Sequence record: PQ464590.1
Strand: one strand, 5' to 3'
DNA: 64,000 nucleotides
Shown here piece by piece: positions 925 to 29,483 of the stretch. Each line of letters opens with the position of its first letter. The stretch's first letter is position 1. Below the pieces are notes generated by a model, which did no database searches, was not told where the DNA came from, and saw only the letters and a list, made by a program, of their open reading frames with translations. A program made the translations under genes and the position numbers.

Positions 925-1008
925 AGTATTTTTTACTGTTCATTTGTACAGTACTAATCCACCAGCTACACTTCCGCACCCTGTGGGCTTGAGCATTGTT
1001 CTTGCTAT
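925..1008 (-). ncRNA. CCCACAGGGTGC element copy 1
   Basis: Core 976-987; H1 AGC/GCT; promoter TTGACA-17-TATTAT at 1015-1043; ends approximate. Confidence 0.55.
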
Positions 1009-2449: not shown

Positions 2450-2508
2450 TTCTTGATCAATATATTTTAGATACATTTGTGCACCCTGTGGGTTAGCTTG
2501 TTTCTATG
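2450..2508 (-). ncRNA. CCCACAGGGTGC element copy 2
   Basis: Core 2481-2492; H1 TAG/CTA; promoter 2515-2543; ends approximate. Confidence 0.5.
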
Positions 2509-2554
2509 GGATCTATAATAGCAAAGGGGCTAACCGAAGTCAACCCCTTGTATA

Positions 2555-2983
2555 TTAAATGTATGAGAAATTTGGCTGTACTTTTTTCATTTCTTCTTTA
2601 GGATCTAGTCCTGATTCTATGATAGCACTGTACCATTGTTTAAACTCGTTAAACTCTGCAAACTTGTTACCTCGTAGGTTGTTACATCTACGGCAAACTG
2701 CTTTGACGTTTACTGCGTCACGTGTACCTCCTAAGCTCCTTAACAAGTCATGCTCTACTGTTAGTTTTTGGGAGAAGTCGAAAGTATATACACTAATCCG
2801 TTTCTTAACTGTACCAGATGCTACAACCGCTTTATAACCGCAGCAGTGGCATCGATTACCATCACGAGCCATTGCATTGATGATAGCTAGACTACCTGAA
2901 CTAATAATAATATCATGCTTAGTCGCGTATAAACGTTCTGACGCTTCATTAAAATCATCACCATCTTTGTACAGTACTTTCAT
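2555..2983 (-). CDS. HNH endonuclease-like protein
   Basis: CHCCG ... TVEHD ... GG ... N ... VCRRCNNLRGNK fits the His-Me finger/HNH pattern. Confidence 0.8.
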   Translation of the reverse strand: MKVLYKDGDDFNEASERLYATKHDIIISSGSLAIINAMARDGNRCHCCGYKAVVASGTVKKRISVYTFDFSQKLTVEHDLLRSLGGTRDAVNVKAVCRRCNNLRGNKFAEFNEFKQWYSAIIESGLDPKEEMKKVQPNFSYI

Positions 2984-3068
2984 CTTTTGAACCTCTTAAT
3001 CATCGTTTAATAGATAATAGCAAAGGGGCTAACCGAAGTCAACCCCTTGTATAAACTTTTCAGTACTG

Positions 3069-3659
3069 TTATCTTAGTAGCTCACGCTTCACGCGGCGGC
3101 GATCTGACAGTCCGTAATGCTGGAAGATGGTACGCTTTGATAATCCAAAGTCTAGCATCTTCACACAACCATTTGCAGACATCCCCAGGTTACGAATATG
3201 CATATCAGTAGCATTGACGTAGTTCAAGTGATAGTCCAGTACTTCAACTGCTTTATAATGCAGGTAAGCCTTACGCTGTGCTTTTGTGAGGTTGTTCCTG
3301 AACCGTACAGCAAAGAGATCATTTGCATACTTGCGGCGACCTGTGAACTGTGTTTCAAGACGTTCCATTACGATAAAGTAATCTTTGTAATGGCAAAGGT
3401 TAACATAGATCTTTGCAAAGTATTTCTTCCACCCTGCGAAATCATAGTCCAGCATATGCCATACGCGGATTTCGTTTTCATTCTGTTCTACGCCAGCATG
3501 ACCCAGGGCGATCTTAATTACTAACTTATCGTTAATCGCGAACACTACTCGACAGGAGCCATTACCAATCTTCTGTAGACCAGCAGCCTCGCAAGCCTTG
3601 ATCATTTCTCGATTGCTCATATCTTCCAGTGATTCTAAGAATTTACGATAGTGTTTCAT
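3069..3659 (-). CDS. protein kinase-like (ePK/APH fold)
   Basis: Gly loop IGNGSCRVVF, VIKIA lysine, MERL hinge, DMHIRN catalytic loop, DFG. Confidence 0.8.
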   Translation of the reverse strand: MKHYRKFLESLEDMSNREMIKACEAAGLQKIGNGSCRVVFAINDKLVIKIALGHAGVEQNENEIRVWHMLDYDFAGWKKYFAKIYVNLCHYKDYFIVMERLETQFTGRRKYANDLFAVRFRNNLTKAQRKAYLHYKAVEVLDYHLNYVNATDMHIRNLGMSANGCVKMLDFGLSKRTIFQHYGLSDRRRVKRELLR

Positions 3660-4029
3660 TTGTTTAGTTCCTTTGCTTAAGTGATGAAAAGAGTATACAG
3701 TACTAATCAGTTTAATGCAATAGCCGAGAGTGCAGAAACTTCATTATAATGTACTTTATTGTTAACAGTACTGTAAACGCGTGCTTTACCATTCTCAATG
3801 ATAACCTTTGCAGTATGATCCTTTGAAACCATGATGATAGTTTCTTCAGTACTGAATCGAGATACAACAAAACCCAATGAAACAATTTCATTTAGAGTTT
3901 TAGCAGAGGACGCCTGGATCAGTGTGTTAGTAGTAGATGGCATTTCGTTATTCCTTAATATTGTGTACTTCGTTTCGATGGGTACATAATACTAAAAGGG
4001 TTGAACCACGTCAACCCTTTATTTTCTCT

Positions 4030-4398
4030 TTATTTGCGTTTACAATCCACCAGCCCCGAAACGATTACTTTTGATTCATCGCGAATAGTAACCGAGCCTT
4101 TGTTTGTGATTTCGTTCACACGAATAGTAGTACTGCCCGTGGCGTCCTCTTCGTGCCAGATCAGATCTTTACCCTGGCGTTGATAATCGTCGTATAATGC
4201 AATCTGCTCCTGTACTGCTGCCCCTGTACTCTCTACAGTCATATTGAGCGTGCAAACCTTCTTTGGCTTGGGTGTGCCAGTACTGAAAGTACTACCATAA
4301 CGATCCGCCATCTGCTGTTCAAAGGATAGTGACGCGTTCGCGTTGAAGGTGATAGCTGCCAGCAGGGACGCGATAGACACAAGTTTATATTTTTGCAT
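4030..4398 (-). CDS. exported hypothetical protein
   Basis: Signal peptide-like N-terminus ending ANA-S. Confidence 0.65.
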   Translation of the reverse strand: MQKYKLVSIASLLAAITFNANASLSFEQQMADRYGSTFSTGTPKPKKVCTLNMTVESTGAAVQEQIALYDDYQRQGKDLIWHEEDATGSTTIRVNEITNKGSVTIRDESKVIVSGLVDCKRK

Positions 4399-5061
4399 GT
4401 TAATCTTCCTGTGAGTTTATACAGTACTGAGCCAGTTGCTCAATTGTTTGGCCTTGCTCGTGTAGTGTTACCAGTTCAAAGGCTATCTGTGAACAATGGT
4501 ACACTACTGCTTTGCTTGCGTCAAGTCGTTTTAATTCCTTGACTACTTCTTGATACACGTTCAAAGTTTCTTACTTGCTCCAACGATGATTAGATTTAAC
4601 AGCATCGATAGTACTGGATGTTTCGCATAACCTGGGCGTAACTTCTTAGCCTCAATGATTGTGCGTGCTGCCTCTTCACGGTTTAGCTTATCCAGTACTA
4701 ATTGTACATTTGTCATCTGTGCTGAACCTTCAGCCATTTTATAACGTTTACCCTGAACAATAACAGAATGATAAGTAACGGTTGACATCTTCGATCCCTT
4801 TAGTTTAAGTTATCGCATTAAAGGATCTCCTTACAATTCGTGTACTTGATTTTATAGTACTGGTGAATATTACGAAATTCATAAATGAATGACGTGATGT
4901 TAGCTTGCAGGTCATCAAAGTCCTGACCTTCTACGATGTGTTGTGACTCTTCGTAATTGTCCTCTCCTGGCTTTAAGCCTTTGAGGGTGATTTGTACTTT
5001 CATTGTTTACCCTCCTTTGCTTCAGTACTGACATCTTAACATATCCACGGCCCATGTCAAC

Positions 5062-5131
5062 TGGTTATTTGTACAGTACTTTTAATTTGTTTATTTCTGT
5101 GCACCCTGTGGGCTGCGGCTTATCTGCCAAT
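5062..5131 (-). ncRNA. CCCACAGGGTGC element copy 3
   Basis: Core 5101-5112; H1 GGC/GCC; promoter 5138-5166; ends approximate. Confidence 0.55.
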
Positions 5132-5190
5132 GACTATATAATAGCAAAAGGGTTAACCGAAGTCAACCCTGTTTATTTGTACAGTACTAA

Positions 5191-5544
5191 TTAATTTACT
5201 TGATTAGTTTCGCCGGTTTTGCGATTGTAGATACACTTTGCTTCACCGAGTTTTTTGGCATCAAAGGCTAACAGTGCTTCTTGTTCGGAGCTTGCCTTGA
5301 TGATTACAGAATCTTCAGCATAACGGGCATCATCGGCTGGTTTATAAGTGATGGCGTATTCTACTACGTCAAAGAAAACATCTACAGCAGCTTGCAAGCG
5401 GTCCAGTTCTTCCGCCAGTTTGCGGAGTTGTTCAGGTGAGATCTTCTCACTGTACAGCGTAGCGTAAACACCTTCAGGTGAACCCACCAGCGTAACATCA
5501 TGACCAGCTAACAGAGCTTCGCGAGTTAAAGGAGATTTAGACAT
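5191..5544 (-). CDS. hypothetical protein
   Basis: Start reassigned to MSKSPL; promoter at ~5588-5616. Confidence 0.65.
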   Translation of the reverse strand: MSKSPLTREALLAGHDVTLVGSPEGVYATLYSEKISPEQLRKLAEELDRLQAAVDVFFDVVEYAITYKPADDARYAEDSVIIKASSEQEALLAFDAKKLGEAKCIYNRKTGETNQVN

Positions 5545-5633
5545 TTTGCAATTCCTTATTAAGTTGGGCTGTCGCACTATTGCCGCCCTATGAAACTAAT
5601 TATACAGTACTGTACTGTAAACGCAAGTACTTT

Positions 5634-5876
5634 TTAACGCTGATTCACAAAAAGATTATACTTCTCATGAGTCATTAGATGTAGATCTTCCCCGTCTATT
5701 ACGATACGATCTGTGCGGGATACTTCCAGTACTGAAAACAGCCCATTAGACAGCTTACGCGGCGTTGTGCGGCCTTCAACGTAATCAGTAGCCATCTGTA
5801 CAGCCTTTTGCAAAAGCTTTGCCTGTGGCTTGCCGTGCACCTTCATACATCGGTTGCCGATCTGGATCTTCTTCAT
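5634..5876 (-). CDS. small basic protein, possible RelE/ParE-like fold
   Basis: 80 aa; RKL..G..SVL.V....RIV.....LMTHEKYN pattern recalled from ParE-like phage proteins. Confidence 0.35.
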   Translation of the reverse strand: MKKIQIGNRCMKVHGKPQAKLLQKAVQMATDYVEGRTTPRKLSNGLFSVLEVSRTDRIVIDGEDLHLMTHEKYNLFVNQR

Positions 5877-5925
5877 GTTTTATGTTCTCTTAAAGGTTTG
5901 GGAGGGTTTCCCCTCCCTGGTTAGA

Positions 5926-6426
5926 TTAGATTGCTACGCGACGTTTGACCAGTACTGGAATCACCGCACCTTTGCGATCTTTGTACTCTTCGTGCACATT
6001 ACGCACGATTGACGCTGGGCGAGGGAGTTCAGCTTGTTTGATGTCCAGTGCTGCGAATGCTTCACGCAGGGCATCAGTGGTGCTTTGTGCTGGAATGATT
6101 ACAGCATCTTCATCCAGTTCTGCAAGTACAGCGTTCAATTCATCAGCATTGTCCAGTTCTGCTACAGTTGCCGTTTCTTTCACAGGCCATGATTTAGGCA
6201 TGTTCAATGCTTCGGTCAAGCCGTCGATCAGCTTCTTATCTTCAGCAGTTGGGACATTCATTTCTACCGCTTTGCACGCCGCGATAACGTCTGACAGTTC
6301 TTTAAACTCAACCGCCCAACGTTCACCTTTAGGAGCATCTTTGCCCATGTCTTTGAAGGTTTCACCTTCTTCACGTGCAACGATTCGGGCAGCTTCACGG
6401 GTAGCAAAGAATTTGATAGTAGACAT
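5926..6426 (-). CDS. hypothetical early protein
   Basis: 166-aa ORF with GAGG RBS and own promoter cassette at ~6470-6522. Confidence 0.8.
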   Translation of the reverse strand: MSTIKFFATREAARIVAREEGETFKDMGKDAPKGERWAVEFKELSDVIAACKAVEMNVPTAEDKKLIDGLTEALNMPKSWPVKETATVAELDNADELNAVLAELDEDAVIIPAQSTTDALREAFAALDIKQAELPRPASIVRNVHEEYKDRKGAVIPVLVKRRVAI

Positions 6427-6519
6427 TTGGTAGTTCCTCTGTTTAGTTAATGTGTCGTCTTGATGAAAGTAATTATGCCAGTACTATCAAACGTTGTCAA
6501 TAGTACTGAGTAATTATTT

Positions 6520-6627
6520 TTAACCGATGTTCAAACACATTACAATTGCCAGTACTGCCACTGCTGCTACCTGGATTCGATTGATCTTGATAGCTTTGAT
6601 TTCGCTGTTTCGAATTGCTTGTTTCAT
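6520..6627 (-). CDS. 35-aa membrane peptide (below ORF-track cutoff)
   Basis: MKQAIRNSEIKAIKINRIQVAAVAVLAIVMCLNIG; GGAG RBS; its stop codon is the start of the next promoter cassette. Confidence 0.55.
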   Translation of the reverse strand: MKQAIRNSEIKAIKINRIQVAAVAVLAIVMCLNIG

Positions 6628-6714
6628 TTTTGTTTACTCCGTTGTGTTGTCTTGATGTAATACAGTATACAGTACTGAATGATGAATGCAAGTACTTTCT
6701 GAAAATAATTTCTC

Positions 6715-6790
6715 TTTTCTTCTGTACTTCTATCCCTTAAACTCAGGACGGATTTGTGCACCCTTGAGGGTTAGACCATTTCACTGGATT
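6715..6790 (-). ncRNA. CCCACAGGGTGC element copy 4 (loop variant CCC-TCAA-GGG)
   Basis: Core 6758-6770; H1 CCA/TGG; promoter TTGACA..CATAAT at ~6797-6828; ends approximate. Confidence 0.5.
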
Positions 6791-6845
6791 GAATACATTA
6801 TGCCAAAAAAGAGGGAGACTGTCAAGCCTCCCATTTGTAAAGATT

Positions 6846-7220
6846 TTACTGGTTTTCGATTTGTTCTTTCTGATAGTCTGTCAGTACTAACATGATTTCG
6901 GCAAACTCCAGTACTTTACCGCTAGACACTTCCACTTCCCCAGGGTAGCATTCAAAGTTTTCGTAGTGATCTTTACAGAAGGAATAAACTTCATCGTTTT
7001 CGATGTCCAGTTCGATCTCTTCATCCAGTTCGAACATCGCCCATTCAGTATGGTAATGACCATCGTTCAGGCGTTCAAGTAAAACGTTGACCATTTCAAC
7101 TTGTACCAGGTTATCACCAACCCACTTACTTACCAGTTGTGGTTCGTCCATTTCCAGTACTGCACAGGATTTACCGTTGTGGATGATTACGTCAGTGATT
7201 TTGAGTTCTGAACCTAACAT
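6846..7220 (-). CDS. acidic hypothetical protein
   Basis: GAGAG RBS before ATG 7220; promoter at 7273-7300. Confidence 0.7.
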   Translation of the reverse strand: MLGSELKITDVIIHNGKSCAVLEMDEPQLVSKWVGDNLVQVEMVNVLLERLNDGHYHTEWAMFELDEEIELDIENDEVYSFCKDHYENFECYPGEVEVSSGKVLEFAEIMLVLTDYQKEQIENQ

Positions 7221-7303
7221 GATATATTCTCTCTTAATAGTGGGGAGAGTCATTCTCTCCCCTATGCCAGCCATTATACAGTACTGGCGTATGGTGTCAA
7301 CAA

Positions 7304-8158
7304 TTATTTGATGTTCAGACCAGTGATGGAACTGTTAGGCACAACCGTAGTAGGAGTGATGCCGTTCCACTTTTCCGCGAATGTTAGCTCAACCAGTGCA
7401 GGGTTATCACGTAGTGCTTTACCTTTAGCATTGATTGCTTCAGCTTCTGCTAGACCTTTAGCACGGATTGCCGCTGCTTCAGCATTTGCCATTTTCTCAC
7501 GCTCATATGCTGCCGCATCTGCACGAGTTTTGGTAATGTCAGCGTCGATCTTTTCCTTTTCCCAGGACTGTTGACGTTTAGTTACTTCAATTTCTTCAGC
7601 CATACGAGATTCAATTTTTTCATCGTAAGCTTTAGAGAAAGAAATATCTTCCACTTCAACGCCGTCAATAATTACAATACCGTCTGGAATAGAATCGCTA
7701 ATAGCCTTGCGTAGTGCTGCAACTAAATCCGCACGTTTCTGAATAGCTGATTCAGCGTTGAATTGACCGAATACAGTTTCCAGGCGTCCCAGTGCTAAAC
7801 GGTCAACTACAGCCGCGTTTAGTCCTGCTACGTCATGATACTTGCGATATACGTCCAGTACTTTACCCGCAGGGATATGATAGGTTACACTAAAGCCCAT
7901 CGTTGCCGCTTGCTGGTCACGGGAATAAGCTGAACGCTCACCATAGGTACGGGTCTGTGACTGTACGCTAATTTCATTCACAGAGTCCACAAAAGGAGCC
8001 TTGAACGCAAAACCAGGTTCAGCAGTGCCAATAACCGCACCGTTACGAGTGATCACGCCACGAGAACCTTCTTCAACTGTATACGCTGAAGAGATACCGA
8101 CCGCAACCAGAATTAGTACTAGGAAGATCCCCAGGATGCCTTTGATAGAAATTTCCAT
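7304..8158 (-). CDS. SPFH/band-7 (prohibitin/HflC-like) membrane protein
   Basis: N-terminal TM helix; YTVEEG.RGVITRNG, GFAFKAPFVDSV, AIEAKM-like segment, Ala/Glu coiled coil, KWNG tail. Confidence 0.9.
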   Translation of the reverse strand: MEISIKGILGIFLVLILVAVGISSAYTVEEGSRGVITRNGAVIGTAEPGFAFKAPFVDSVNEISVQSQTRTYGERSAYSRDQQAATMGFSVTYHIPAGKVLDVYRKYHDVAGLNAAVVDRLALGRLETVFGQFNAESAIQKRADLVAALRKAISDSIPDGIVIIDGVEVEDISFSKAYDEKIESRMAEEIEVTKRQQSWEKEKIDADITKTRADAAAYEREKMANAEAAAIRAKGLAEAEAINAKGKALRDNPALVELTFAEKWNGITPTTVVPNSSITGLNIK

Positions 8159-8324
8159 TCTTTCCCCTTATTAGAGTATAATTGCAATTGCTCATTATGA
8201 GCACGGACAGATTGAATCGCCTCAATAAATTCTATTTGAGACTTTTCTTTCTTAAAATTATTAGTACTGTTATTCAGTACTGAATTAATAGGAGTAATCA
8301 TTTCTTTTATTCCTAAATTAAAAA

Positions 8325-8346
8325 GCTGGTGGGTTAAACCACCAGC
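8325..8346. terminator. intrinsic terminator whose stem is an inverted Chi pair
   Basis: GCTGGTGG-GTTAAA-CCACCAGC, followed by TTTTT on the minus strand, directly after the stop of ORF 8353..8712. Confidence 0.75.
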
Positions 8347-8352
8347 ATTATA

Positions 8353-8712
8353 TTATTTCTTTACCTGAACACAGGAGCCAGTATATTTTCCAATTACTTG
8401 TTTATCTTTATAGATATAAGCAATTGCACCAAGCTTACCTGATTCATTCTTCATAACACCCAATTTATCAATAACCAGGGTTACATCTGAACTATCACCG
8501 ATAGGATAGATAAACATTTCTTGTCCCATCCCGATCAACTGATATTTCGTGTATTGCGTTTCATCAGTGACGGTTTCTACGTCTTGCCCGTTCACGTCGA
8601 TGTTACACTTGTACATCGGCCAGGCTTGATCTTTGATAGCTTCAGTGATAGGATTGTTAGCCAGTACTGAAGTACTAAAGAGCAATGCCCCTAACAAGAA
8701 TGCTCGTTTCAT
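8353..8712 (-). CDS. exported hypothetical protein
   Basis: Signal peptide MKRAFLLGALLFSTSVLA-N. Confidence 0.7.
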   Translation of the reverse strand: MKRAFLLGALLFSTSVLANNPITEAIKDQAWPMYKCNIDVNGQDVETVTDETQYTKYQLIGMGQEMFIYPIGDSSDVTLVIDKLGVMKNESGKLGAIAYIYKDKQVIGKYTGSCVQVKK

Positions 8713-8872
8713 AATGCCTTTACCGCCTTTACGATGTCTTTGACTGAACGGTTAGCATACACCATTACTTCGATCATTGCAATGGCTTTTGGTGAAACAT
8801 TGCCAACTTTATTCAGTACTGCTTCAAATACCTGGTCTTGCTTGCTCATGATAGTACTCTCGTTTAGATTAA

Positions 8873-8948
8873 GGGTCGGGGCTGAGTGGATTCGAACCAC
8901 ACTTATTCAGTACTCGAACTGTTCTACCTGTTGAACTATCTAGCCCCG
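8873..8948 (-). tRNA. non-canonical tRNA-like element (76 nt; possible mimic or pseudogene)
   Basis: D-arm GTTC-AACAGGTA-GAAC; T-arm GTGG-TTCGAAT-CCAC; acceptor CGGGGCT/AGCCCCG; degenerate anticodon arm GTTC-GAGTACT-GAAT; ends ACCC. Confidence 0.7.
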
Positions 8949-10216
8949 ATGTAATACATCTTACTCTTCGTCGTCGCCGTTGTCAAGCGAAACATCAAAC
9001 AAATTTAAAATTTCGTGTCTGTGCTGGAGTAGAAATTCTGTGATCGCGATGTTATCATAAGGCGATAAGCCAGTGTTAGGACGTTCAGCACGGACAGTAC
9101 TGATCATTTTACCAACGAGATTATTAATCTCTTCCTCGTTCGCTTCAATGGCTTTCTTTGCTGAATCGTACAGCTTGCCTTTGTATTCGAATTTGGTAAC
9201 AGGTCGAATCTTTGCCATTTCTTTTTCCTCTTAAGGGTTAGGGTACTTCAGTACTGGAATACTGTTTCCCCTGGGGTGTGGCTGGTTACTTGACTTGATT
9301 GATTATACAGTACTGGCTAATGATGTCAATACCTTTTACATGAAATCGATCAGACCCATGTTAGATGCAATTTCGACGGCCTGGACTTTATCAGCGTCAA
9401 CTGGTACAAGATGTTTAAACGTCAACGCCAGATCACCGCAGAAGTAATAGAACGTGTTTTCGTTATAGGTGCAACGTTCGCCAGCGTCCTCAACCTCATC
9501 GCTATGGAAGAAAGGCATCCCTTCGTTGAAAACATATGCAACCGCGAGATCGATGTTATCCGCACGTACCAGGCGTTTAACAGTTTCGGTGTACTCACCC
9601 TGGCGAGCTTCCATAGTACAAACAAACAGGTTCAGGCCAGTAGCTTCGGTCATGGTTACGTTAGACATAATTTAATTCCTTAATGGTTGGTTAGTGTCGT
9701 TTCAATAAAGTTATTATGCCAGTACTATCAATCTATGTCAATAGTACTGGAGTAAAACTTTATGCGGTTTTCTTCTCTATAGTTACGTAAGTACTAAGAC
9801 CCGCGTACCAGTCTTTAAAGCCACGGCATTTACGCCCCGCTTCCTGGATGCTAACATAGAATGTGCCTGGCTCGCGTTCTCCGTTGTCAACTTCGGCGGT
9901 GAGTTTGGTAATGGCTTCAGTCAGTGCTACCTGGCAAGCCGCAACGTTTTTGACATCGTTAAAGATAGTACCGCAGAAGTTAGGAGTACCGTTGTAACGC
10001 ACACGAACGAAACCATCGGATACTTCACAGTTACGGAAAGAGATTTTGAGATCCATGTTAATTCACCTTAATGTTTGAGAGTAGAACCATTTCCCCTCTC
10101 GATGTAAACAATTATACAGTAATGAAGATCTATTGCAAGCATTATTTTAAAATATTCAGTACTTTTATTTGAATCTTTTCGCTTGACATACAACGCCAGT
10201 ACTGTATAATTAGTAC

Positions 10217-10312
10217 ATAAGCCGGACACAAGGCACTAACCCACAGGGTGCGGAAATGTATCTATAGGTTATAGTACTGTACAAATAAACAGGGGGAATT
10301 GCAGTTCCCCCT
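10217..10312 (+). ncRNA. CCCACAGGGTGC element copy 5 (stand-alone small RNA candidate)
   Basis: Promoter 10183-10210; core 10240-10251; terminator-like hairpin 10291-10312; no ORF; opposite to flanking genes. Confidence 0.7.
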
Positions 10313-10822
10313 AACCAGGATAGTCAGCGTTTATTGATTGCGTGCAAATGTGTTATCGGTTAAGATGTCCCAGGTCGCTTTCACGATACGATACATTTCA
10401 CCAGTACTCACACCGCGTACAGTACTCTCAATGCAACCGCCGTTTGCAGAATGCTTTTCTAGTACCATGTAACCATTTTCAGAATGAGACTGATAACGAT
10501 ACGGGGCATCACGGAAGAGTAAAGCACCGTTCAACTTGTCAACCATATCTGCTACATCTTTGCGAGTTTTACGTGACATCTTTTGTTTCCTTAATGTTGT
10601 TTGCTTCAGTAAGTTAATTATGCCAGTACTATCACCTATTGTCAATAGTACTGTGATAATTATTTTAACCGTTAAACCAGAAGTCGAATAATTCTTTTGG
10701 TGTAGCGTCGTAGTACTTTGCAGCCTCTTCAGCAGCAGCCTCTTCAGTGAAACCGTCACGTGTAATTAAGATATGCATAAAGTCACATCCTAACTCCAGG
10801 GCCGCAGTGTCGTTACCGTGGA

Positions 10823-11083
10823 TCATCTCATGCTCCTATGCCAGCAATTACGTTTGCCGCGTGTAAAGATACTATCATGTTCCGCCTGGCAGGTCAAACA
10901 ATATTTTACACCTTTCACAGCTTCACGCCTACGCTCAGGAATCGCCTCTAAGCACTCAAGGCAGTGAGTACGGCTTACAGTAGTACTATCCCCTAGCTGT
11001 TTACGTGCGTGCGATACAGCGGCCTGTATGACCGCCTGTATCTCTTCTTGCTCCGCACCATCTTTAGCGAATCCAACCGCCAC
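10823..11083 (-). CDS. TraR/DksA-family C4 zinc-finger protein (YbiI-like)
   Basis: GTG start after GAGG; (M)AVGFAKDGA N-terminus; CLECLEAIPERRREAVKGVKYCLTCQ. Confidence 0.9.
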   Translation of the reverse strand: MAVGFAKDGAEQEEIQAVIQAAVSHARKQLGDSTTVSRTHCLECLEAIPERRREAVKGVKYCLTCQAEHDSIFTRGKRNCWHRSMR

Positions 11084-11383
11084 AATTATTCCTCTACTAC
11101 AGACCAATACCCGCGATATTCAGTCTCATCATCATCGCAGATGTTTTCCATCACTTCATTAAATTCCCCTTCACGGAAATCATCACCAACCATTTCCAGG
11201 ATGTACGCAATTGCATTTTCACGCAAGCCGTCTACATGGTGCGGGAGAACTTCTTCACCGCTAACCTGTTTTACAGTGAGATTGATTTTGATATTCAGAT
11301 CCATTTGGTTTACCTTAATGTTGTTTCAATAAAGCCATTATGCCAGTACTATCAAACATTGTCAATAGTACTGGAGTAAAACT

Positions 11384-11767
11384 TTATTCGCCCATATAAA
11401 TCAAGTTATCATCGCCCACGTATGGCGAACATTCCCCGATACCTTCACAGTACTTTGTAAGTACATCTCCCAGGTGTCCGAGTTCACGATCCCAGAATCC
11501 AGCACCGTGACGCTCACGGGTTAAAAACAGATCATGCCCTACAGAACTATACGTGTAATGCGGGTGAGTGTCAACTAAAAGATGAATATCATCACCATGA
11601 GCTTTGAGCAAACGAGAACAAGCGATTACTGCGGCCTCATGACCTTCCTGCGATAACTCATAATCTTCCAGTGAGTTATCATCCGCGTCAGTACTAGCCC
11701 AATGCATAGCTCGAATGTAACCGCCCAGGATCTTCGCGTGTACAGTGTCAAGTTCGATACCAGTCAT
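11384..11767 (-). CDS. hypothetical protein
   Basis: 127-aa ORF flanked by promoter cassettes. Confidence 0.75.
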   Translation of the reverse strand: MTGIELDTVHAKILGGYIRAMHWASTDADDNSLEDYELSQEGHEAAVIACSRLLKAHGDDIHLLVDTHPHYTYSSVGHDLFLTRERHGAGFWDRELGHLGDVLTKYCEGIGECSPYVGDDNLIYMGE

Positions 11768-13124
11768 GATTCTTTCCTTAATAGTGTATGTCGTTTCAAT
11801 AAAGTAATTATGCCAGTACTATCAAACTATGTCAATAGTACTGAGTAATTATTTTAACGGTTGTAAATGTCATGAATCAAAATGTATGATTCACGTTTAA
11901 TGTGTGGATGGTAAGGCAAATAATGCTTATCCAGTACTGACATCAAATCCTGTTCGAGATCATTGATATCATCATAGAATGTTGGGGATACCAGGATATG
12001 CAATATATCAGTATCCACCAGCGTTGCATTGAGTTCCTGCACGTTCTCAATATCCGCATTACGCTTCCAATCTTGCATATTGGAAGTCAGCACGGTACGA
12101 ATGTCATTAGCGTTTAATAAAATATCCATTATTGATTCTCCTGTTTAAGTAAAGTAATTATGCCAGTACTATCAAACTATGTCAATAGTACTGTGATAAT
12201 TATTTTACCTTTTTATCCGTAGTAAAGTACATCGCGATCTGGCGGGTAGTCAGGCACGCCGCACGTAAAGCACGCTCAGTATAGGAGGCATGTTGGTTAA
12301 AGCGATGCATCCCCAGGCCGTTACCGATAGTAATGTTTTCAGTTGCTTTGTATTGTTTCTGATTCATTGCCGTACCCTCTTAAGTGTCGTTAAAGTAATT
12401 ATGCCAGTACTATCAAACTATGTCAATAGTACTGTGATAATTATTTTAATCCAGGATTAACAATTCAAACGTGTAAGTACTGTTTTGAACGCGGTACTCA
12501 TGACGGTTTCCCACTTCGCGGATCTTAATCAAACGCGTATGCGATACCAGGTTTAACGCCTCGCGTACATCCACCAGCGTTTTACAGTCACTGATATCTT
12601 TGTTGAAGTTATCAGAATCACAGACCAGTACTCGACGGGCATTTTTCAGAATCTTGTTAATCATTTTCTACTTCCTCTTAAGAGGGGAGGTTGTCTCCCC
12701 TATGCAAAACATTATACAGTACTGAGATTACTTTGCAAGTACTTTCTATTACTTTTCTGCGGAGTACTTGTAAAAGATATCAGTATTCAAAGCATCCAGT
12801 ACAAAGTTTTTAAAATCCATTTCCGCAAGGCTGTAACGCTCTGTGCAGAACTGTACTGGCGTATGCTTCCCGATTTGCTTCAGTACTTCCCAGGTGATAC
12901 CAGTCTCAGTCTCAGGCGTTTCACGGCGAATGATACAAGCGTAGTAAGAGATCAGTTTACCTTCCTGACCATAAGAGAACTCTTTAACTGTAGTAGATGT
13001 TTCTGTGTTTTCGAATAATTCCATTTTGTTACCCTCTTTAAGTTAGGCTTTGTTTGCCTGATGTAATACAGTATACAGTACTGAATAATTAATGCAAGTA
13101 CTTTCTCAAAATATTTTCTCTTTC

Positions 13125-13204
13125 TTTTTCCTGTACATATGTACAGTACTTTTATTTTACTTACTTCTCCGCACCCTGTGGGCTTGAGCATTGTTCTTGC
13201 TATG
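13125..13204 (-). ncRNA. CCCACAGGGTGC element copy 6
   Basis: Core 13171-13182; 5' part identical to copy 1; promoter ~13210-13240; ends approximate. Confidence 0.55.
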
Positions 13205-13555
13205 TGAGTATTATGCCAAAAAAGAGGGAGACTGTCAAGCCTCCCTTTTGTAAAGATTTATGCTTTTGGAATGCGTTTCGGCATCGGTGGAGTAGACCAG
13301 TTATTGTACTGGCGTTCTGTGATTTCGCCACCTTTGCAAAGAGAGTCGATATAGTTCGACCAGGATTCATGGAAAGCTGGCTGGTCATTCTTCCAGCGTG
13401 GATCTTGCTGTACCATCGCAATCCACATTTCTTTGTGAGCTTGTACTACAGTTGCCTTATTCATAATCTTCTCTCTTAAGTTCGGAGGGAGAACCGTTTC
13501 CCCCTCTCGATTTAAAACATTATACAGTACTGAATACTATTTGCAAGCTTTTCTT

Positions 13556-14044
13556 TTACTCTTCTTCTTGTACCTCTTCAACCTGGATAGGATGTAAACG
13601 TCCATCTTCTTTCAATAACTTCCAGTACTGTTTACCCTCGTTAGGATTACCCGCAGCCAACGGTGATCCATACATCTTGTGATAGTGGAATTGATCTGTT
13701 AGTTCGTAGTCGTCGTGATACTCGCGACCGTCAAACACATACACCGGGCAAGGATAATAATTATCAATGTTCGCCGCGATGATATCAGCCATACCAAACA
13801 ACACTTCAACTGTGGTAACAGTCTCGCGTTTTTCACGTCCCCAGTTCAAAGCATGAAACATGCAATCCTGTAACTGTGGGCGTAGAATACTGATCACGCC
13901 GCCACTTGTAACAGCCTGTGCCGCCGAATAGTTATTGTAATGATCCACCAGGATTTTACCAGCCAGATCCCCATCATTCACCAGGTCAACGTAACGGACA
14001 GAACCATCTAAGTTAATGAAAGCGATAAGGGCTTGAGTGCTCAT
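13556..14044 (-). CDS. hypothetical protein
   Basis: AGGA RBS before MSTQAL; cassette promoter TTGACT..TAGAAT upstream. Confidence 0.75.
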   Translation of the reverse strand: MSTQALIAFINLDGSVRYVDLVNDGDLAGKILVDHYNNYSAAQAVTSGGVISILRPQLQDCMFHALNWGREKRETVTTVEVLFGMADIIAANIDNYYPCPVYVFDGREYHDDYELTDQFHYHKMYGSPLAAGNPNEGKQYWKLLKEDGRLHPIQVEEVQEEE

Positions 14045-14764
14045 GATTGTTTCCTTAATGTTGTTTCGTTTCGATAAAGTACATTCTACAGTACTATCAC
14101 ACAAAGTCAATAGTACTGGATGAATATATTTTACCAGCCCGCATTACAACGACGTGACGCGTACACTTCGCCCTGACGAATTACCATGCGGTGAGATCCT
14201 ACCACCTGTGCCACACGGGTTTTAAAATCGTGCTCAGTACTAAAATCTTTTGAATCCACTTCGTCGATGGTTTCAACTTTACCCGCGAATTTCACATTGA
14301 TATAACGTTTCATATTTTGTTTCCTTAAGTGTTGTTTCAATAAAGTACATTCTACAGTACTATCACAGAAAGTCAATAGTACTGGATGAATATATTTTAT
14401 TTGTGTTCTAACATGTAATGATAAGTAATGTATTTTGATTCATCACCAATCAAATCAATATACGCCTGGAGCGTCAAACGATCTGGAAGCGGGGGAAGTT
14501 CTAAACATTCCTGTACTGTAACCATTTCGTCAAACGTGTACTTAACACGCCCCGCACGATTCCATTGATTCAGTAATTCCGCAGGGTGTAAACCAGGGAT
14601 CATGATGCATACAGAATCAATTCGAACGTTATCACCGTTCACAGATACAAACTCAGAGTGATACTTAAAAGCTTTAGTGAATGCATGTTTCATTTTTATT
14701 TCCTCGCTTTGTTTCGATATAGAGAAGTATACAGTACTGAATAATATTTGCAAGCATTATTTTA

Positions 14765-14848
14765 CCTGTTCTTTTATACAGTACTATTTCAGTACTAATA
14801 CTACAGATACACTTCCGCACCCTGTGGGCTTGGCCTTTGTTCCGGCTT
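14765..14848 (-). ncRNA. CCCACAGGGTGC element copy 7
   Basis: Core 14817-14828; H1 GCC/GGC; promoter 14855-14884; ends approximate. Confidence 0.55.
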
Positions 14849-15835
14849 GATAGTACTATAGCAAAAAAACTGGGAGGCTGTCAACCCCCCATTTGTAAAT
14901 TATTTGCTTTCCAGGTAAACGCCGTATTCGTTCGTTTCACCTTCCCACACGCGGTTGATCGTGTACGCGTCCGAATAGATGTTAATCTCATTCGTGGTAT
15001 AGTCTACCGCTATTTCGTTAATGTCGAAAGATCCGTGGGAAGTGGTTACAGTACTGGCATTAGGGAAGATTGTAACGTTCTCCACCTTACTAAGTGCACG
15101 CCCAAATTCATCACGGATAACGATAGTCATGCTCATTGTTCTTTCCTCTTAAGTGGGGGAAGATGTTTCCCCCTTGAGTACTAATATACAGTACTGGAAA
15201 ACTATTGCAAGTACTTTGTGCAATTATTTTTTAGTACTATCGCCACGCCGCCCCTGTGCCATAGCCTGTGCCTGTTCTACACTAAAACGCTCATACAGGC
15301 TTTTCTCTTCAGGGGTTAGTGTGGCGGCTTCCCGCATCATACGCCCCGCACGATCCCAGCTACGCGGCGTAGGGATACCCTGGATATCTTCGGGGGCAAT
15401 GTCGGGCACGCCTGGAACGTCTACAAACTCGATCCCCAGCTTTTCGGCTTGTTCACGGAATACACTAGATAATAGTTTCATCTTTAAAGCTCCTGTATCG
15501 CTCTGTGAGCGGTTTTAATGGTTAATCAGTACCGTACAACGCTTTAACGTCAAAAGCCCCGCTAATCGGCTTACAGGGCTTATCAATGCGATAGTGCACG
15601 CCACGATCCGATACGAAATAACCCTCAATATCTAAGTACATGAAAAACTCTTTCAGCACTCCACCGATTACACAAACCATCCACCCACTAGCACGCTTTT
15701 TGTGTAGACCATCGTTAACGAGAATCTTTCTCATTACGGTGCCAGGTGTTGTGATTTCGCTTAAGTTTCGCATTTCGATCTCCTGAATGATATTAGGATA
15801 GTACTGTACACGTATACAGTACTATCATTAACCAC

Positions 15836-16279
15836 TTAGGCAGTGTAAGCCGGATTAGGCACACGGCGGGTAATGAGGCGTACATCGTGCGGAACGTTCT
15901 CACGGTAGCACTTCAATTGTGCTTTTGCCTCTTTCATGGTTTCCTCGCTGGTGGCATCATCCCAACCATAGCCGCAATTCTCCTGGATCACATACTCATT
16001 GATCCATTTGGTTACACGCTTAGGCTTCATACAAGCCGCCACAATCGCATCCAGGCTGTTCTGTAACATTTCACCGTAGTACTCCCAAAACGCCGGATAG
16101 TTTGCTTTGATAAGCTTGAACTGGATTTTAATCTCATCCAGGTTCGCCTGTGTCAGTACTAAACCGCTTTCCTTCACTTCTTTCACTGACATTGCTTTCT
16201 TGCTTACACGCCAGTTGTAGCCAGAAGCATAACCAGGACGATTCATGATCAGGTGAGTATCTAAGAATAATTTAGCCAT
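15836..16279 (-). CDS. hypothetical protein
   Basis: 147-aa ORF with AGGA RBS. Confidence 0.7.
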   Translation of the reverse strand: MAKLFLDTHLIMNRPGYASGYNWRVSKKAMSVKEVKESGLVLTQANLDEIKIQFKLIKANYPAFWEYYGEMLQNSLDAIVAACMKPKRVTKWINEYVIQENCGYGWDDATSEETMKEAKAQLKCYRENVPHDVRLITRRVPNPAYTA

Positions 16280-16390
16280 TTTGTAATTCCTTAATTAAGT
16301 ACTGTCTCGATTTGATAAAGCTCATTATACAGTACTGGATAACTATTTCAACTGTTAATTTATCCAGTACTGTCGTAATGTACTCTATGC

Positions 16391-17017
16391 TTATGCGTTC
16401 ACGCCGTTTTTAGCTTCCAGGGTAGCGGCTGCCGCCTCTTTGTCTACCGCGTACTTGGTAATGAATGCCGCACGGTCATCGCCAAACTCAGCAGATACAC
16501 GCTCTTTCCAAATGTTCGGCATGTTGCCAGTAGTAGGCATGTCGTATGCTTCGCCGTTGAAATCAATCGCTACGCGGTTGAACGTGAACGACTTTTCAGA
16601 TTTAGCAGGGTACTTTTTAGCCATCGCCGTGTCTACCATACCCTGTGCCACTTCCAGATCCAGGCCCATCTTTTCAACGATGTCTTTCAACATGTTTTCC
16701 GCTTCCTGTTTACGGGCTGCCAGTTCTGCCGCGTTCTCAGCTTCACGCTGTGCTTTACGGGTCGCCAGGGTGTCATTCAGTTTTGCCAGGCGTGCGATTT
16801 TGTTCGCTTCTTTCTGCTCTGCGGCTTCTTTCTGGCGGGTCTTAACCTGCTCTTTCGCGGACTTCACAGCCAGGGAGAAATTCAGCCCCATCTTCTGTAC
16901 CAGTGCAACCGCATCATCACCACCAGCAGCGATAGCCAGGTCAGTCAGTTTAGTTGCCAGTACTTCCACATTACCAGATTCGATAGCAGCTTTCAGAGTT
17001 ACGATTGATTTAGACAT
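16391..17017 (-). CDS. divergent H-NS/StpA-like protein
   Basis: Manual alignment: LAKL..coiled coil..GLD..PAK, then IDFNGEAYDMPTTGNMP..K..G..F versus H-NS [19 protein letters not shown]..F. Confidence 0.6.
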   Translation of the reverse strand: MSKSIVTLKAAIESGNVEVLATKLTDLAIAAGGDDAVALVQKMGLNFSLAVKSAKEQVKTRQKEAAEQKEANKIARLAKLNDTLATRKAQREAENAAELAARKQEAENMLKDIVEKMGLDLEVAQGMVDTAMAKKYPAKSEKSFTFNRVAIDFNGEAYDMPTTGNMPNIWKERVSAEFGDDRAAFITKYAVDKEAAAATLEAKNGVNA

Positions 17018-17430
17018 TTTTAAATCCTCAGTTAGTAAGTTAGGTTATTTGTTTGCTTCGGGGTTAGTATTACATTTTGCTAACCATCCGTCAAGTACTA
17101 TTTTAAATCTTTTTTTCATCTTTCGGTCGCCTGGTTTTCGTTTGACTTACAGGCTGTCTACTTAGTGTTGCCCCGTTCGATGTAATACATATTACCAGAG
17201 TAGAAACTATTTGCAAGTACTTTCTACAAAATAAATGAATCTTTTTACTTTCCTTATACTTTACCAGTACTTAAGATGCAACGCCACCAGCAGCCTTGTA
17301 ACGTGTTTAAATCAGTACAGAACCCTATGACATACCCCAGGGAGTAAAAGCCCGTACAACGCGTTACAGGCCATTTAAATTGATTGAAAATAGTTGTTGA
17401 CTTCATATGCCAGTACTGTATAATGACCCC

Positions 17431-17524
17431 ATAGCTTAGACAAATAGCTCAGCCCACGGGGTGCGGAATTGTGTCTAATGAATATAGTACTGTACAAATA
17501 AACAGGGGAAGCCGTAGCCTCCCC
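17431..17524 (+). ncRNA. CCCACAGGGTGC element copy 8 (stand-alone small RNA candidate)
   Basis: Promoter 17397-17424; H1 AGCT/AGCT; core variant 17453-17464; terminator hairpin 17505-17524 followed by a T-run. Confidence 0.7.
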
Positions 17525-19187: not shown

Positions 19188-19324
19188 GTTGTTTCCTTAA
19201 TAGTGTTGTTTTGCTTCAGTCCCTATATAGTACAGTACTGACAAAAGAATGCAAGTACTATTTTCATAAAAAAGATTTTGCATTTAGGTATTGACTCCAC
19301 CCACAGAACCTGTATAATTAGTAC

Positions 19325-19400
19325 ATAAGCCGGACACAAGGCACTAACCCACAGGGTGCGGAAAACCGTCCAGTACTGTAAATGATTATCATTCTCATTC
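19325..19400 (+). ncRNA. CCCACAGGGTGC element copy 9
   Basis: Promoter 19291-19318; core 19348-19359; first ~47 nt identical to copy 5. Confidence 0.6.
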
Positions 19401-19447
19401 GCCGGGTGTACCTCCGCACCCTGTGGGCTACGTCATTTCGCTGACTT
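19380..19447 (-). ncRNA. CCCACAGGGTGC element copy 10 (convergent with copy 9)
   Basis: Core 19416-19427; H1 GTCA/TGAC; promoter TTGCAA..TACAAT at ~19454-19482. Confidence 0.6.
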
Positions 19448-19864
19448 GTACTAATTGTACAGTACTGAAAAATTATTGCAAGCTTTATTTTCAGGGAGGG
19501 CGAACCCTCCCAGAGTCCCTACGCCGCGTTGTGAGGCGTTATTACAATCAGTGGTATATAGTCCCGTAATTCTAGCGTATCGCCGTCTGTGAGGGCTTCC
19601 AGGGCTTCCACGGTGCAAGCCTCGCACGGGTAGTACATGAGAACATCACCCATAGTCATGATAGTTCCATTAACTTTAAAGTACTGTTTAGAATATTTCT
19701 GTCGCATGATAATCATTCTCATTAACCAGGTTCGACTATCTCCCCTGTTCTGAAATTCATTATACAGTACTGAATTGTTATTACCAGCATATTTTTCACA
19801 TTCTTTTTGAATCTTTTTGCGTTTAGGGTATTGACATAAAATCGCAGTACTGTATAATTACTAC

Positions 19865-19940
19865 ATAGACGCGAGATGCGGGAACCCCAGGGGGTGCGGG
19901 AATATAACCATAAAGCGAAATGATTCTCATTCTCATTTAG
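19865..19940 (+). ncRNA. CCCACAGGGTGC element copy 11
   Basis: Promoter 19831-19858; H1 CGC/GCG; core variant 19885-19897. Confidence 0.55.
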
Positions 19941-19996
19941 CTTTTAACGGACGGACTCCCGCACCCTGTGGGCTTGTCCTGTTACGCCAGGATTGA
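19920..19996 (-). ncRNA. CCCACAGGGTGC element copy 12 (convergent with copy 11)
   Basis: Core 19961-19972; H1 TCCTG/CAGGA; promoter TTGCAA-17-TATAAT at 20002-20030. Confidence 0.6.
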
Positions 19997-21198
19997 AACT
20001 AATTATACAGTACTGAATTATTTTTTGCAAGTACTAAAAATAGTAGTAGACAATTCATTTCTATGTGATAAGATGATTCCAGATTTAAAACAATTCGATT
20101 CCAGATACTGCCAGGGAAAAAACAACCCTGACGCGGTAGGCTAGCCGCACCCCGCGATCTAGCAAAGGTAAATGCGAATCATTCCTATTTGCAAATGAGA
20201 ATCAATCTCATATGCGAACGAGTATCATTTGCAAATGCAGATGATAACCATTCTCATCTGGCTCAAAATTCGAGTCGGCTTTAGCTCGCCCTAAAGAAAG
20301 CCACCAGCAACCCTTCGTGTATCCATAGTACTGCCATAGTACTGCCATAATTCTTCAATTAATCTCAGTACTGAATGCTTAGCCAAACAGTACTGTTTAT
20401 GTTTTCCGATGGAGGTCAGAAATCTTATTAAGTGGTGAATCCAATTCACTATTCACAGTACTATAGGGATAGGTGGTCCCATGTTAATAGTACTACTATA
20501 GTGAACTGCACTTACTTAAACAACATTCGGGCAGTCATGAAGTTCACCGTGTTCATGAAAGTAGACAGTCCCTAGGCTTAGCAGTACTGGAATGATGGAA
20601 GGCACACACTTCAGTACTGAAAGCTTTCTTTTACTCTTTGACGATGTACACCAGGATATAACGTAGGAGCTTAGCTGGTGTGCCTATCTCCCTCGTAGGA
20701 CGCTATTATCACATATACGCGTGTCCACGTCAAGCTTTATTTTCAATAATGCAGTACTGAATTTTTGGGCCAGGCATGATCGAGATTTAGGATGGAGCAC
20801 CTTCCAGATTTTTGCTGGAGGGTCATTGACTTTTTTAAATTTTCAACTTTTTGCTGGAGGGTCATCGGGAATTTCCCTGAAGCCTGGTTCCCTCCTTTCT
20901 CCCCACCTCATTGTACACCCCTCTTGTAGTACTGTCAAGAAATACTTCTTGTACTCTGACGTTACAAGAAGATATAGTTGCAGGGGTGGTACAGTACTGA
21001 ATAGTACTTAAGAATGCTTTGCCGTGTTTACCTGTACTTCTGTACATATGTAATTATACCCATACATATAAAAATGTACAGTACTGTACGTATATACAAA
21101 TGTGCCTTTTACGGGGTGTTGAATCCTTTCGATAACGTTTTGTCCAGGGGGAATTTACCCCCTGTGTAAGATTACGTTCTCTTTCAGGAACTAACACC

Positions 21199-24750: not shown

Positions 24751-24762
24751 GGAGAGAGAGAA

Positions 24763-25890: not shown

Positions 25891-25900
25891 GGAGAGAGAT

Positions 25901-27040: not shown

Positions 27041-27044
27041 CAGG

Positions 27045-27077
27045 ATGCCTGGTACTTTTGGGTACTGGGCATTTTTA
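27045..27077 (+). terminator. intrinsic terminator
   Basis: ATGCCTGGTAC/GTACTGGGCAT 11-bp stem plus TTTTT; near copy at 31782-31814. Confidence 0.75.
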
Positions 27078-27110
27078 ATTAAATACTGTATATTAAATGA
27101 GGGGATTTAT

Positions 27111-28304: not shown

Positions 28305-28316
28305 GAGAATAAAAAA

Positions 28317-29468: not shown

Positions 29469-29483
29469 GGAGATTAAAAAAAA

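Follow-up and report, generated by a model that had tools for sequence, protein, structure and literature searches.

What is the function of two promoter pairs that face each other head-on in the early DNA of a giant phage, each pair enclosing a sequence that resembles an operator of the iron regulator Fur? The question is raised by a ~2-kb region of Erwinia phage Hallingskeid, a 366-kb RaK2-like jumbo phage of Erwinia aphidicola, of which positions 1-64000 of record PQ464590.1 were analyzed (64 kb; hereafter the window). A preliminary description had reported the layout promoter > element > Fur-like box < element < promoter twice, at 19291-19482 and 19831-20030, with the strings CCCACAGGGTGCGGA (19348-19362), TCCGCACCCTGTGGG (19413-19427) and AATGATTATCATTCTCATT (19381-19399) in pair 1 and AAATGATTCTCATTCTCATTT (19918-19938) at the center of pair 2, and each of these coordinates and strings proved exact. 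The features of the region are collected in Table 1.

The promoters were predicted by a consensus scan for sigma70-type sequences, scored as matches of 12 positions. The predicted starts are 122 bp apart in pair 1 and 130 bp apart in pair 2, and therefore the transcripts would overlap by the same 122 and 130 bp. The preliminary description had seen no obvious terminators in the pairs; in agreement, the promoter/terminator scan revealed no terminator-like site and no intrinsic terminator (GC-rich hairpin plus T tract) within 19291-19482 or 19831-20030, and no U run follows the long hairpins of the read-through RNAs. These hairpins, which had been offered as an alternative to a protein-based switch, are physically real, with predicted folding energies of -48 to -57 kcal/mol (z -4.5 to -6.3).

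The boxes were scored against the 19-bp Fur consensus GATAATGATAATCATTATC and its 7-1-7 form TGATAATnATTATCA in a scan that covered 114 of the 366 kb of the Hallingskeid genome. Matches of 16/19 occur at only two places in the window (19378 and 19708), and the 7-1-7 pattern with up to two mismatches has 15 matches where 2.0 are expected; six of these fall within 19377-20256, or 1.4% of the window. Scores of 14-16/19 were obtained for all four single boxes and for two boxes of the array (20191 and 20237), and on the 7-1-7 form the single boxes score 13-15/15. As background, random 52-nt windows taken from the remaining sequence reach at least 14/19 in 0.8% of cases and 16/19 in 0 of 3000. When the four-box array was compared blindly with 5,426 complete E. 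coli genomes (blastn), 17 weak matches were obtained, and the three inspected lie just upstream of fhuF and fecI, whose promoters are classical Fur-repressed targets. The array stretch ATGATAACCATTCTCAT is an exact 17-mer shared with part of the E. coli fecI operator. No Fur homologue was found by tblastn with E. coli Fur in Hallingskeid or in RaK2-, T5- or rV5-like phages, and therefore the binder would be a host protein. Judged by the consensus scores, the fecI identity and the absence of a phage homologue, the boxes first noted as Fur-like are very probably real Fur operators, and those at the centers of the pairs very probably serve the host Fur protein. None of them overlaps -35/-10, the classical position of a Fur operator: the single boxes lie at +37 to +68 and the array at +88 to +178 from the start of promoter P5. 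The dyad boxes begin 7-12 bp past the end of the element. Box 3 (about +37 relative to a weak leftward promoter) extends over the start codon annotated for CDS0061.

The preliminary description had proposed conservation of the layout in related genomes as a check, and the comparison bears it out. In five phages (Hallingskeid, RaK2, Muenster and the metagenomic IMG/VR relatives L023, a 360-kb contig, and L080), nine of nine pairs carry a 14-16/19 box on the dyad. RaK2 and Muenster each possess two convergent pairs with a central box, one extra promoter-element-box unit and an array of about five boxes, whereas in L023 and L080 the pairs likewise enclose a box, and an array is also present in L023. 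An exact-motif scan of IMG/VR returned 117 matches, mostly chance 14-mers, and L023 and L080 were the only relatives among them. The spacers of the pairs are either 54 nt or 61-65 nt long, and both length classes are common to different phages. With megablast, Hallingskeid gives short matches to the Klebsiella phages RaK2, K64-1 and Muenster (Alcyoneusvirus) and to E. coli Asteriusvirus phages. The dyad box sequences differ among the five phages, and the DNA is otherwise too diverged for megablast; boxes that differ in sequence between flanks diverged to this degree suggest selection on the box itself. The Asteriusvirus phage ph0011 has two pairs with 43-nt spacers and no box (9-10/19), and thus the convergent pair is older and the Fur box a lineage-specific insert. 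The presence of a Fur box on the dyad goes along with Fur boxes in the array. At the ph0011 position syntenic to the Fur array of Hallingskeid and RaK2 (L003 2980-3100) there is an array of TAGCCGTCTAG / TAGCCATCTAG repeats, and the elements of this phage are followed by ACGCCCAAAAT(C/T)C motifs.

The element between promoter and box belongs to a larger family. Its motif CCCACAGGGTGCGG (14-mer, up to three mismatches) occurs 13 times in the window against 1.6 expected; the true copies number 12 (11 of the 13 motif matches plus a variant at 6757-6770), all below 20 kb, and the final 50 kb of the Hallingskeid record contains no copy. In every copy the motif lies 25-30 nt past the -10 of a near-consensus sigma70 promoter. 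Hairpin P1, located between the start and the motif, is built from at least 16 different stems in six loci with a conserved loop (GNGAAA or AGAACAA), and its mean best stem of 3.07 pairs compares with 2.19 in shuffles (maximum 2.77). Hairpin P3 forms between the motif's GGGUG and a YRYCY pentamer located precisely 8 nt 3' of it in 28 of 38 unique copies, with nine different 3' strands (shuffle control: mean 7.6, maximum 16). Both statistics were obtained with position-anchored scripts and shuffles, which replaced RNAalifold on a MAFFT alignment of 13 element copies, where the variable hairpin was misaligned and only CCC/GGG was recovered. Thus, the covarying hairpins define the element as a transcribed module of ~47 nt, comprising two hairpins and an exposed CCCACA linker, which resembles a promoter-proximal protein-binding RNA site more than a small-RNA gene with a terminator. 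Neither the element nor the pairs matched Rfam 15 at the gathering threshold, the only match in the whole window being a tRNA (8878-8945), and a permissive Rfam scan of 19200-21200 gave chance-level matches only. A mobile palindromic element of the kind of miniature inverted-repeat transposable elements was ruled out, as the pair keeps its place beside the CDS0058 homologue in L080, and no resemblance to a CRISPR repeat or a ToxI mimic was apparent, although no search aimed at either was made. In several unpaired copies a stem-loop overlaps the -35. Terminator-like hairpins on the minus strand at about 990-1050, 2495-2545, 5115-5165, 13185-13235 and 14830-14880 place the -35 within their loop or stem, and their T tract contains the -10, as in aaggggTTGACAtcgttcagcccctttgcTATTAT; terminator and promoter are thereby packed into one short cassette, which recalls the PeSLs of T4-like phages.

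The unpaired copies of the element are associated with a different candidate operator. LexA-like CTG-N10-CAG sites scoring at least 13/20 number twelve in the window against 0.4 expected, and ten of them, at 14-17/20, are located in the first 17.5 kb (934, 4407, 5059, 5167, 10275, 13129, 14764, 15802, 16350 and 17488), the best being TACTGTACACGTATACAGTA at 15802 and TCCTGTACATATGTACAGTA at 13129. A LexA-like box follows the motif in six of the eight unpaired elements, starting 21-22 nt past it in five and 32 nt past it in the sixth; for the paired elements, the distance from the motif to the start of the Fur box is 17-25 nt. These similar offsets suggest that promoter, element and host operator are combined as modules. 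As evidence, the LexA-like sites count for less than the Fur boxes, because they are part of a repeated cassette and are absent from Alcyoneusvirus.

Our tentative answer to the question, which retains the central idea of the preliminary description, is that host Fur-Fe2+ on the dyad acts as a two-sided barrier between head-on polymerases, and that the further boxes gate the CDS0061 and P5 transcripts. This reading is favored because all boxes lie 3' of promoters, their offset from the element is fixed, terminators are absent and the dyad position is conserved. From these features we infer Fur binding, a block to polymerase and the consequences of read-through as follows. In an iron-replete cell, host Fur-Fe2+ would occupy the dyad box as well as the boxes behind the CDS0061 promoter and P5. 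Bound Fur would block an elongating polymerase arriving from either side; the output would be short element RNAs, and the two promoters would be insulated from one another. On iron starvation, or later by dilution over replicated phage DNA, Fur would leave the DNA and polymerase would read through. Each RNA would then gain the 15-bp inverted repeat and fold into a hairpin of ~80 nt, the two RNAs would be complementary over ~125 nt, and head-on collisions would take place, with leftward read-through reaching early genes.

Several points weigh against a Fur roadblock. Classical Fur repression covers -35/-10 and is not a block to elongation at about +60, and to our knowledge Fur is poorly documented as a roadblock. 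Hairpin P3 would still be enclosed by a polymerase that stalls at the box edge, and two strong promoters firing into one dimer-of-dimers site may evict Fur. The ph0011 pairs, with their 43-nt spacers, are boxless, and therefore pairs can work without Fur. No transcriptomes of RaK2-like phages were found in the literature searched. The four-box array and similar arrays in T5-like and rV5-like phages do not lie between promoters, and in T5 they coincide with the region where DNA injection stops, which indicates a role other than setting 3' ends.

Muenster has a PhageTerm-predicted terminal repeat of 20,030 bp, and its syntenic region lies no more than 1.3 kb from that terminus, whose equivalent in Hallingskeid falls at approximately 20950-20995 in an alignment with RaK2 and Muenster. 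The Muenster terminus sequence itself had no match in the window, and a second copy of the region is absent from the right end of the Hallingskeid record, which holds one copy only. By homology with Muenster, the ~2-kb non-coding stretch would form one end of a ~20-kb terminal repeat of small early genes; this placement rests on the Muenster synteny and on the restriction of the elements to 1-20 kb. The terminal repeat would be early DNA transcribed by host RNA polymerase. The predicted promoter pairs are set within a larger unit and are not free-standing switches: the same ~2-kb region holds at least four further Fur-like boxes behind two further predicted promoters. The PhageTerm-predicted Muenster terminus is 17 nt past a motif-like GCCCACTGGGTGCGAC (L004 14020-14054; L002 3820-3860), and therefore a copy of the element core motif adjoins the physical genome end.

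The Hallingskeid array also matches non-coding DNA of unrelated virulent phages, and with a Phapecoctavirus array as query, matches were found in 332 phage records, including T5-like, rV5/phi92-like and Pectobacterium phages. In T5 (AY587007.1 9150-10450; L130) and Spc35 (L129), the boxes occupy non-coding DNA at the inner end of the left terminal repeat. The annotated 'palindrome D' of T5 (9330-9349) is a 19/20 LexA box, and copies 3 and 4 of 'direct repeat C', with the palindromes annotated across them, are Fur-like boxes of 15-16/19 at 9574-9640. The shear point of first-step transfer in T5 is 9618 (Davison, 10.1101/866236), and thus these boxes lie around it. Spc35 has the same Fur-like and LexA features as the T5 injection-stop region, and AAS21 (L005) has about eight Fur-like boxes and an 18/20 LexA box. 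Davison's analysis of the T5 region names DnaA boxes and never Fur or LexA (10.1101/866236). Our literature search, which was incomplete, found no work naming the T5-region repeats as Fur or LexA sites and none on Fur sites in RaK2-like, T5-like or jumbo phages, so that an earlier mention is possible. In the Phapecoctavirus ECO340P2 (L006 1186-1830), six Fur-like boxes share a non-coding region of ~900 bp with a strong promoter and a structured, GC-rich segment. An origin-like, AT-rich block of AAACTTTAAAT-type repeats follows the array there, and an upstream motif, TTTGTAAAGA, is common with RaK2.

The occurrence of the same box arrays in unrelated phages, including the T5 injection-stop region, makes a non-transcriptional role a serious rival. 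All boxes might recruit abundant host Fur, perhaps with LexA, to the non-coding end of the first-entering repeat and so build a terminal nucleoprotein structure like that of the T5 injection stop, which pauses or organizes entry, or insulates or protects the end, with transcription being secondary. The Muenster homology places the region at the non-coding end of a repeat of small early genes, and T5 is arranged alike, with pre-early genes followed by the non-coding inner end of the left terminal repeat and with a LexA box and, around the shear point, Fur-like boxes; Spc35 and AAS21 share these features. However, the paired DnaA boxes that Davison regards as the hallmark of the injection stop are absent (TTWTNCACA has one match in 18.5-21.5 kb, and four in 64 kb against ~9 expected), and two-step transfer is not known for RaK2-like phages. 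Moreover, a protein bound to DNA already inside the cell would favor entry and not a stop, and it would be left unexplained why single boxes are placed so exactly at promoter-pair dyads in five phages. On balance we consider this role unlikely.

The number of boxes also brings to mind a sponge: some 7-8 boxes per repeat copy, multiplied by replication, would titrate host Fur and derepress iron uptake for the benefit of phage iron enzymes. Titration of Fur by cloned multicopy boxes is established (the fhuF::lacZ assay), and the boxes are dense, near consensus and arranged in a regular 23-bp array, a type of array recurring in those 332 records of several unrelated groups, with no phage Fur homologue found. 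Against this, one or two early genome copies cannot titrate thousands of Fur molecules, and a sponge has no need for a fixed position on the dyads. T5 destroys host DNA within minutes (10.64898/2026.04.02.716235), and therefore nothing would be left to derepress. A sponge thus appears improbable.

We give little credence to the idea that some phage protein, or a host protein that is not Fur, binds the boxes, whose likeness to Fur sites would be coincidence or mimicry. The syntenic TAGCCGTCTAG-type array of ph0011 shows that this position tolerates other kinds of binding site, and about 80% of the phage genes are without known function. Coincidence is hard to reconcile with the exact 17-mer shared with the fecI operator and with inspected E. 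coli matches that are Fur operators, and one box type recurs in phage groups without an obvious common regulator. In T5-like phages, the boxes adjoin sites for host proteins, namely near-perfect LexA boxes and DnaA boxes.

Least probable of all is a protein-free role, in which a ~130-bp imperfect palindrome would supply hairpins or duplexes as RNase III substrates, antisense elements or replication primers and its AT-rich apex would be only Fur-like: the strong folds, the inverted repeat kept in the boxless Asteriusvirus pairs and the origin-like repeat block after the array of one rV5-like phage speak for it, but the apex is a Fur box of differing sequence in all nine pairs of the five phages (random AT-rich DNA reaches this in fewer than 1% of windows), and boxes also occur outside the palindromes, at 19702-19726 and 20168-20258.

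A broader generalization is possible, if on the doubtful side. RaK2-like, T5-like and rV5/phi92-like virulent phages may carry arrays of operators for host Fur and LexA (and DnaA in T5) in early or terminal non-coding DNA, where the host proteins would serve as time-zero sensors or gates; the copies of T5 'direct repeat C' with their palindromes would be Fur boxes and 'palindrome D' an SOS box, and jumbo phages would use modules of promoter, small structured RNA and operator, some of them head-on. The parts are known (sigma70 promoters, Fur operators, convergent transcription), and it is their arrangement, and its recurrence in early or terminal non-coding DNA of several lytic phage groups, that appear undescribed in the literature searched. 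Large lytic phages may thus read the iron state of the host: if host Fur binds, a strictly lytic giant phage would sense iron status before making any protein of its own, using non-coding parts. The recurrence in T5 also offers a testable handle on a 50-year-old question, the role of the T5 injection-stop repeats.

Table 1. Features of the head-on promoter region of phage Hallingskeid and of the related modules (positions are those of the window; promoters are predicted).
Feature	Position	Strand	Description	Basis
Promoter P1	19291..19318	+	TTGACT-16-TATAAT, 11/12; predicted start ~19325	promoter scan
Promoter P2	19454..19481	-	TTGCAA-16-TACAAT, 9/12; predicted start ~19447	promoter scan; repeat family D3
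Promoter P3	19831..19858	+	TTGACA-16-TATAAT, 12/12; predicted start ~19865	promoter scan
Promoter P4	20002..20030	-	TTGCAA-17-TATAAT, 10/12; predicted start ~19995	promoter scan
Weak promoter copy before CDS0061	19759..19787	-	leftward; -10 TATAAT, poor -35	repeat family D3; below promoter-scan cut-off
Promoter P5	20047..20074	+	TAGACA-16-TAAGAT with TG; back to back with P4	promoter scan
Element L1	19325..19371	+	hairpin P1 19329-19342, CCCACA linker, motif 19348-19361, hairpin P3 GGGUG-N8-CGUCC 19354-19371	
Element R1	19400..19447	-	hairpin GUCA-GCGAAA-UGAC, motif 19414-19427, hairpin P3 GGGUG/CACCC	
Element L2	19865..19912	+	hairpin CGC-GAGAU-GCG, motif variant CCCAGGGGGTGCGG 19886-19899; hairpin P3 not formed	
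Element R2	19945..19995	-	hairpin UCCUG-GCGUAA-CAGGA, motif 19959-19972, hairpin P3 GGGUG/CGUCC	
Eight unpaired promoter-plus-element modules	974..17466		motifs at 974 (-), 2479 (-), 5099 (-), 6757 (-), 10240 (+), 13169 (-), 14815 (-), 17453 (+)	
Fur box 1, pair 1 dyad	19378..19399		16/19; 7-1-7 core TGATTATCATTCTCA 19383-19397; +66 from P1, +58 from P2	
Fur box 2, pair 2 dyad	19916..19938		14/19; TGATTCTCATTCTCA; +64 from P3, +68 from P4	
Fur box 3	19702..19726		16/19; perfect 7-1-7 TGATAATCATTCTCA 19707-19721	repeat families D1, D7
Four-box Fur-like array	20168..20258		23-bp period: 20168, 20191, 20214, 20237	repeat families D1, D9, I1
CDS0061	19519..19722	-	67-aa hypothetical protein	one weak PHROG match, E = 5e-4
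GC-rich hairpin between CDS0061 end and promoter P2	19493..19513		GGGAGGG-cgaa-CCCTCCC	sequence
Conserved leader 3' of promoter P5	20081..20160	+	TCCAGAT, ACTGCC-GGGAAAA-CCCT hairpin, ACGCGGTAGG	four-phage alignment
Remainder of non-coding region	20259..21198		tiny open reading frames without PHROG matches	alignment with RaK2, Muenster

Genes 1-72 of Hallingskeid are small and nearly all on the minus strand, and the open reading frames annotated in 19.2-21.2 kb are all tiny. None of the eleven annotated at 19223-21197 matched PHROG except CDS0061, weakly, and no Pfam matches were found for CDS0061 and its neighbors. The small frames called across the ~2-kb region in the public record are probably spurious annotations and not genes. 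CDS0061 is the sole plausible gene between the two promoter pairs, and RaK2 lacks it at the corresponding spot. The weak promoter before CDS0061 has the same architecture as P2 and the CDS0058 promoter (19228-19256). The GC-rich hairpin beyond the CDS0061 end has no T tract after it on either strand and is not called a terminator by the promoter/terminator scan. Promoter P5 and its leader are conserved in RaK2, ph0011 and L023, and TCCAGATTTTTGCTGGAGGGTCAT direct repeats are present beyond the leader at 20780-20870; leader and repeats together could represent a non-coding RNA, or a packaging or replication site.

Several further properties of the window were noted. A lone tRNA gene on the minus strand (8878-8945; Rfam RF00005, 33.1 bits) is located amid the small early genes, and six tandem paralogues of ~380-400 aa annotated as 'regulator of chromosome condensation' (RCC1-like repeats) follow right after the early region (23542-30620). 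The hexamer AGTACT occurs in 327 copies against ~20 expected, a 16-fold excess with 5-9 sites per kb that is seen both in coding and in non-coding DNA (22.7-64 kb: 168 copies, 13.5 expected), and CAGTACTG occurs in 110 copies, located in the spacer of most early promoters. The AGTACT excess is seen in all RaK2-like loci (including L002, L003, L004, L023 and L080) and not in the T5-like or rV5-like loci. CCCGGG, CCATGG, CAGCTG, AGGCCT and AGCGCT are each absent from the window against 4-9 expected, which resembles restriction-site avoidance.

Among known systems, the Fur operators of Enterobacterales (fecI, fhuF, iucA) share with the Hallingskeid boxes the 19-bp / 7-1-7 inverted repeat, including the GAGAAT variant, and the overlapping or tandem arrangement of sites. 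They differ in lying over -35/-10, whereas the Hallingskeid boxes are found at +37 to +178 on a virulent phage with no iron-related gene 3' of them. The stx1 promoter of lambdoid prophages, which is Fur-repressed, provides a precedent for a host Fur operator on phage DNA that links a phage transcript to iron. There, a single box overlaps the promoter of a protein gene in a temperate phage, in contrast to Hallingskeid, a lytic jumbo phage with at least seven boxes in its non-coding early region.

The face-to-face promoters of coliphages 186 (pR/pL) and P2 (Pe/Pc) resemble the Hallingskeid pairs in their overlapping transcripts and a potentially decisive repressor site. In these switches, however, a phage immunity repressor acts at the promoter, whereas the Hallingskeid candidate is a host protein midway, with no gene in the overlap and in a virulent phage. 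The rightward promoters neither contain nor directly precede a credible open reading frame, and there is no sign of an immunity repressor that would make the Hallingskeid pairs a switch of the 186/P2 type.

The T5 injection-stop (iss) region resembles the Hallingskeid stretch in being non-coding and in its arrays of the same Fur-like palindromes, with LexA-type boxes present in the repeat as well; in T5 it ends a long terminal repeat with many small early genes, a position that synteny predicts for the Hallingskeid stretch. It differs by its paired DnaA boxes and 'direct repeat D' series, and it has neither CCCACAGGGTGCGG elements nor convergent pairs; Hallingskeid has no DnaA-box cluster, and two-step DNA transfer, a property of T5, is not known for RaK2-like phages.

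The PeSL cassettes of T4-like phages consist of a stem-loop, an early promoter, a Shine-Dalgarno sequence and a start codon (PMC4122927). Like the Hallingskeid modules, they are repeated intergenic cassettes with near-consensus sigma70 early promoters among small variable genes, but they have no conserved transcribed RNA module. The paired copies in turn show no Shine-Dalgarno sequence, start codon or gene, and an upstream stem-loop was found only at promoter P2. For the element itself, the closest parallels are lambda nut (boxA/boxB) and HK022 put. The element has no boxA consensus, its order of parts is reversed, no N-like protein was identified, and half of the copies point away from genes. 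As in nut and put, however, it is located directly past early promoters and combines a hairpin of free stem sequence and conserved purine-rich loops with a conserved linear stretch.

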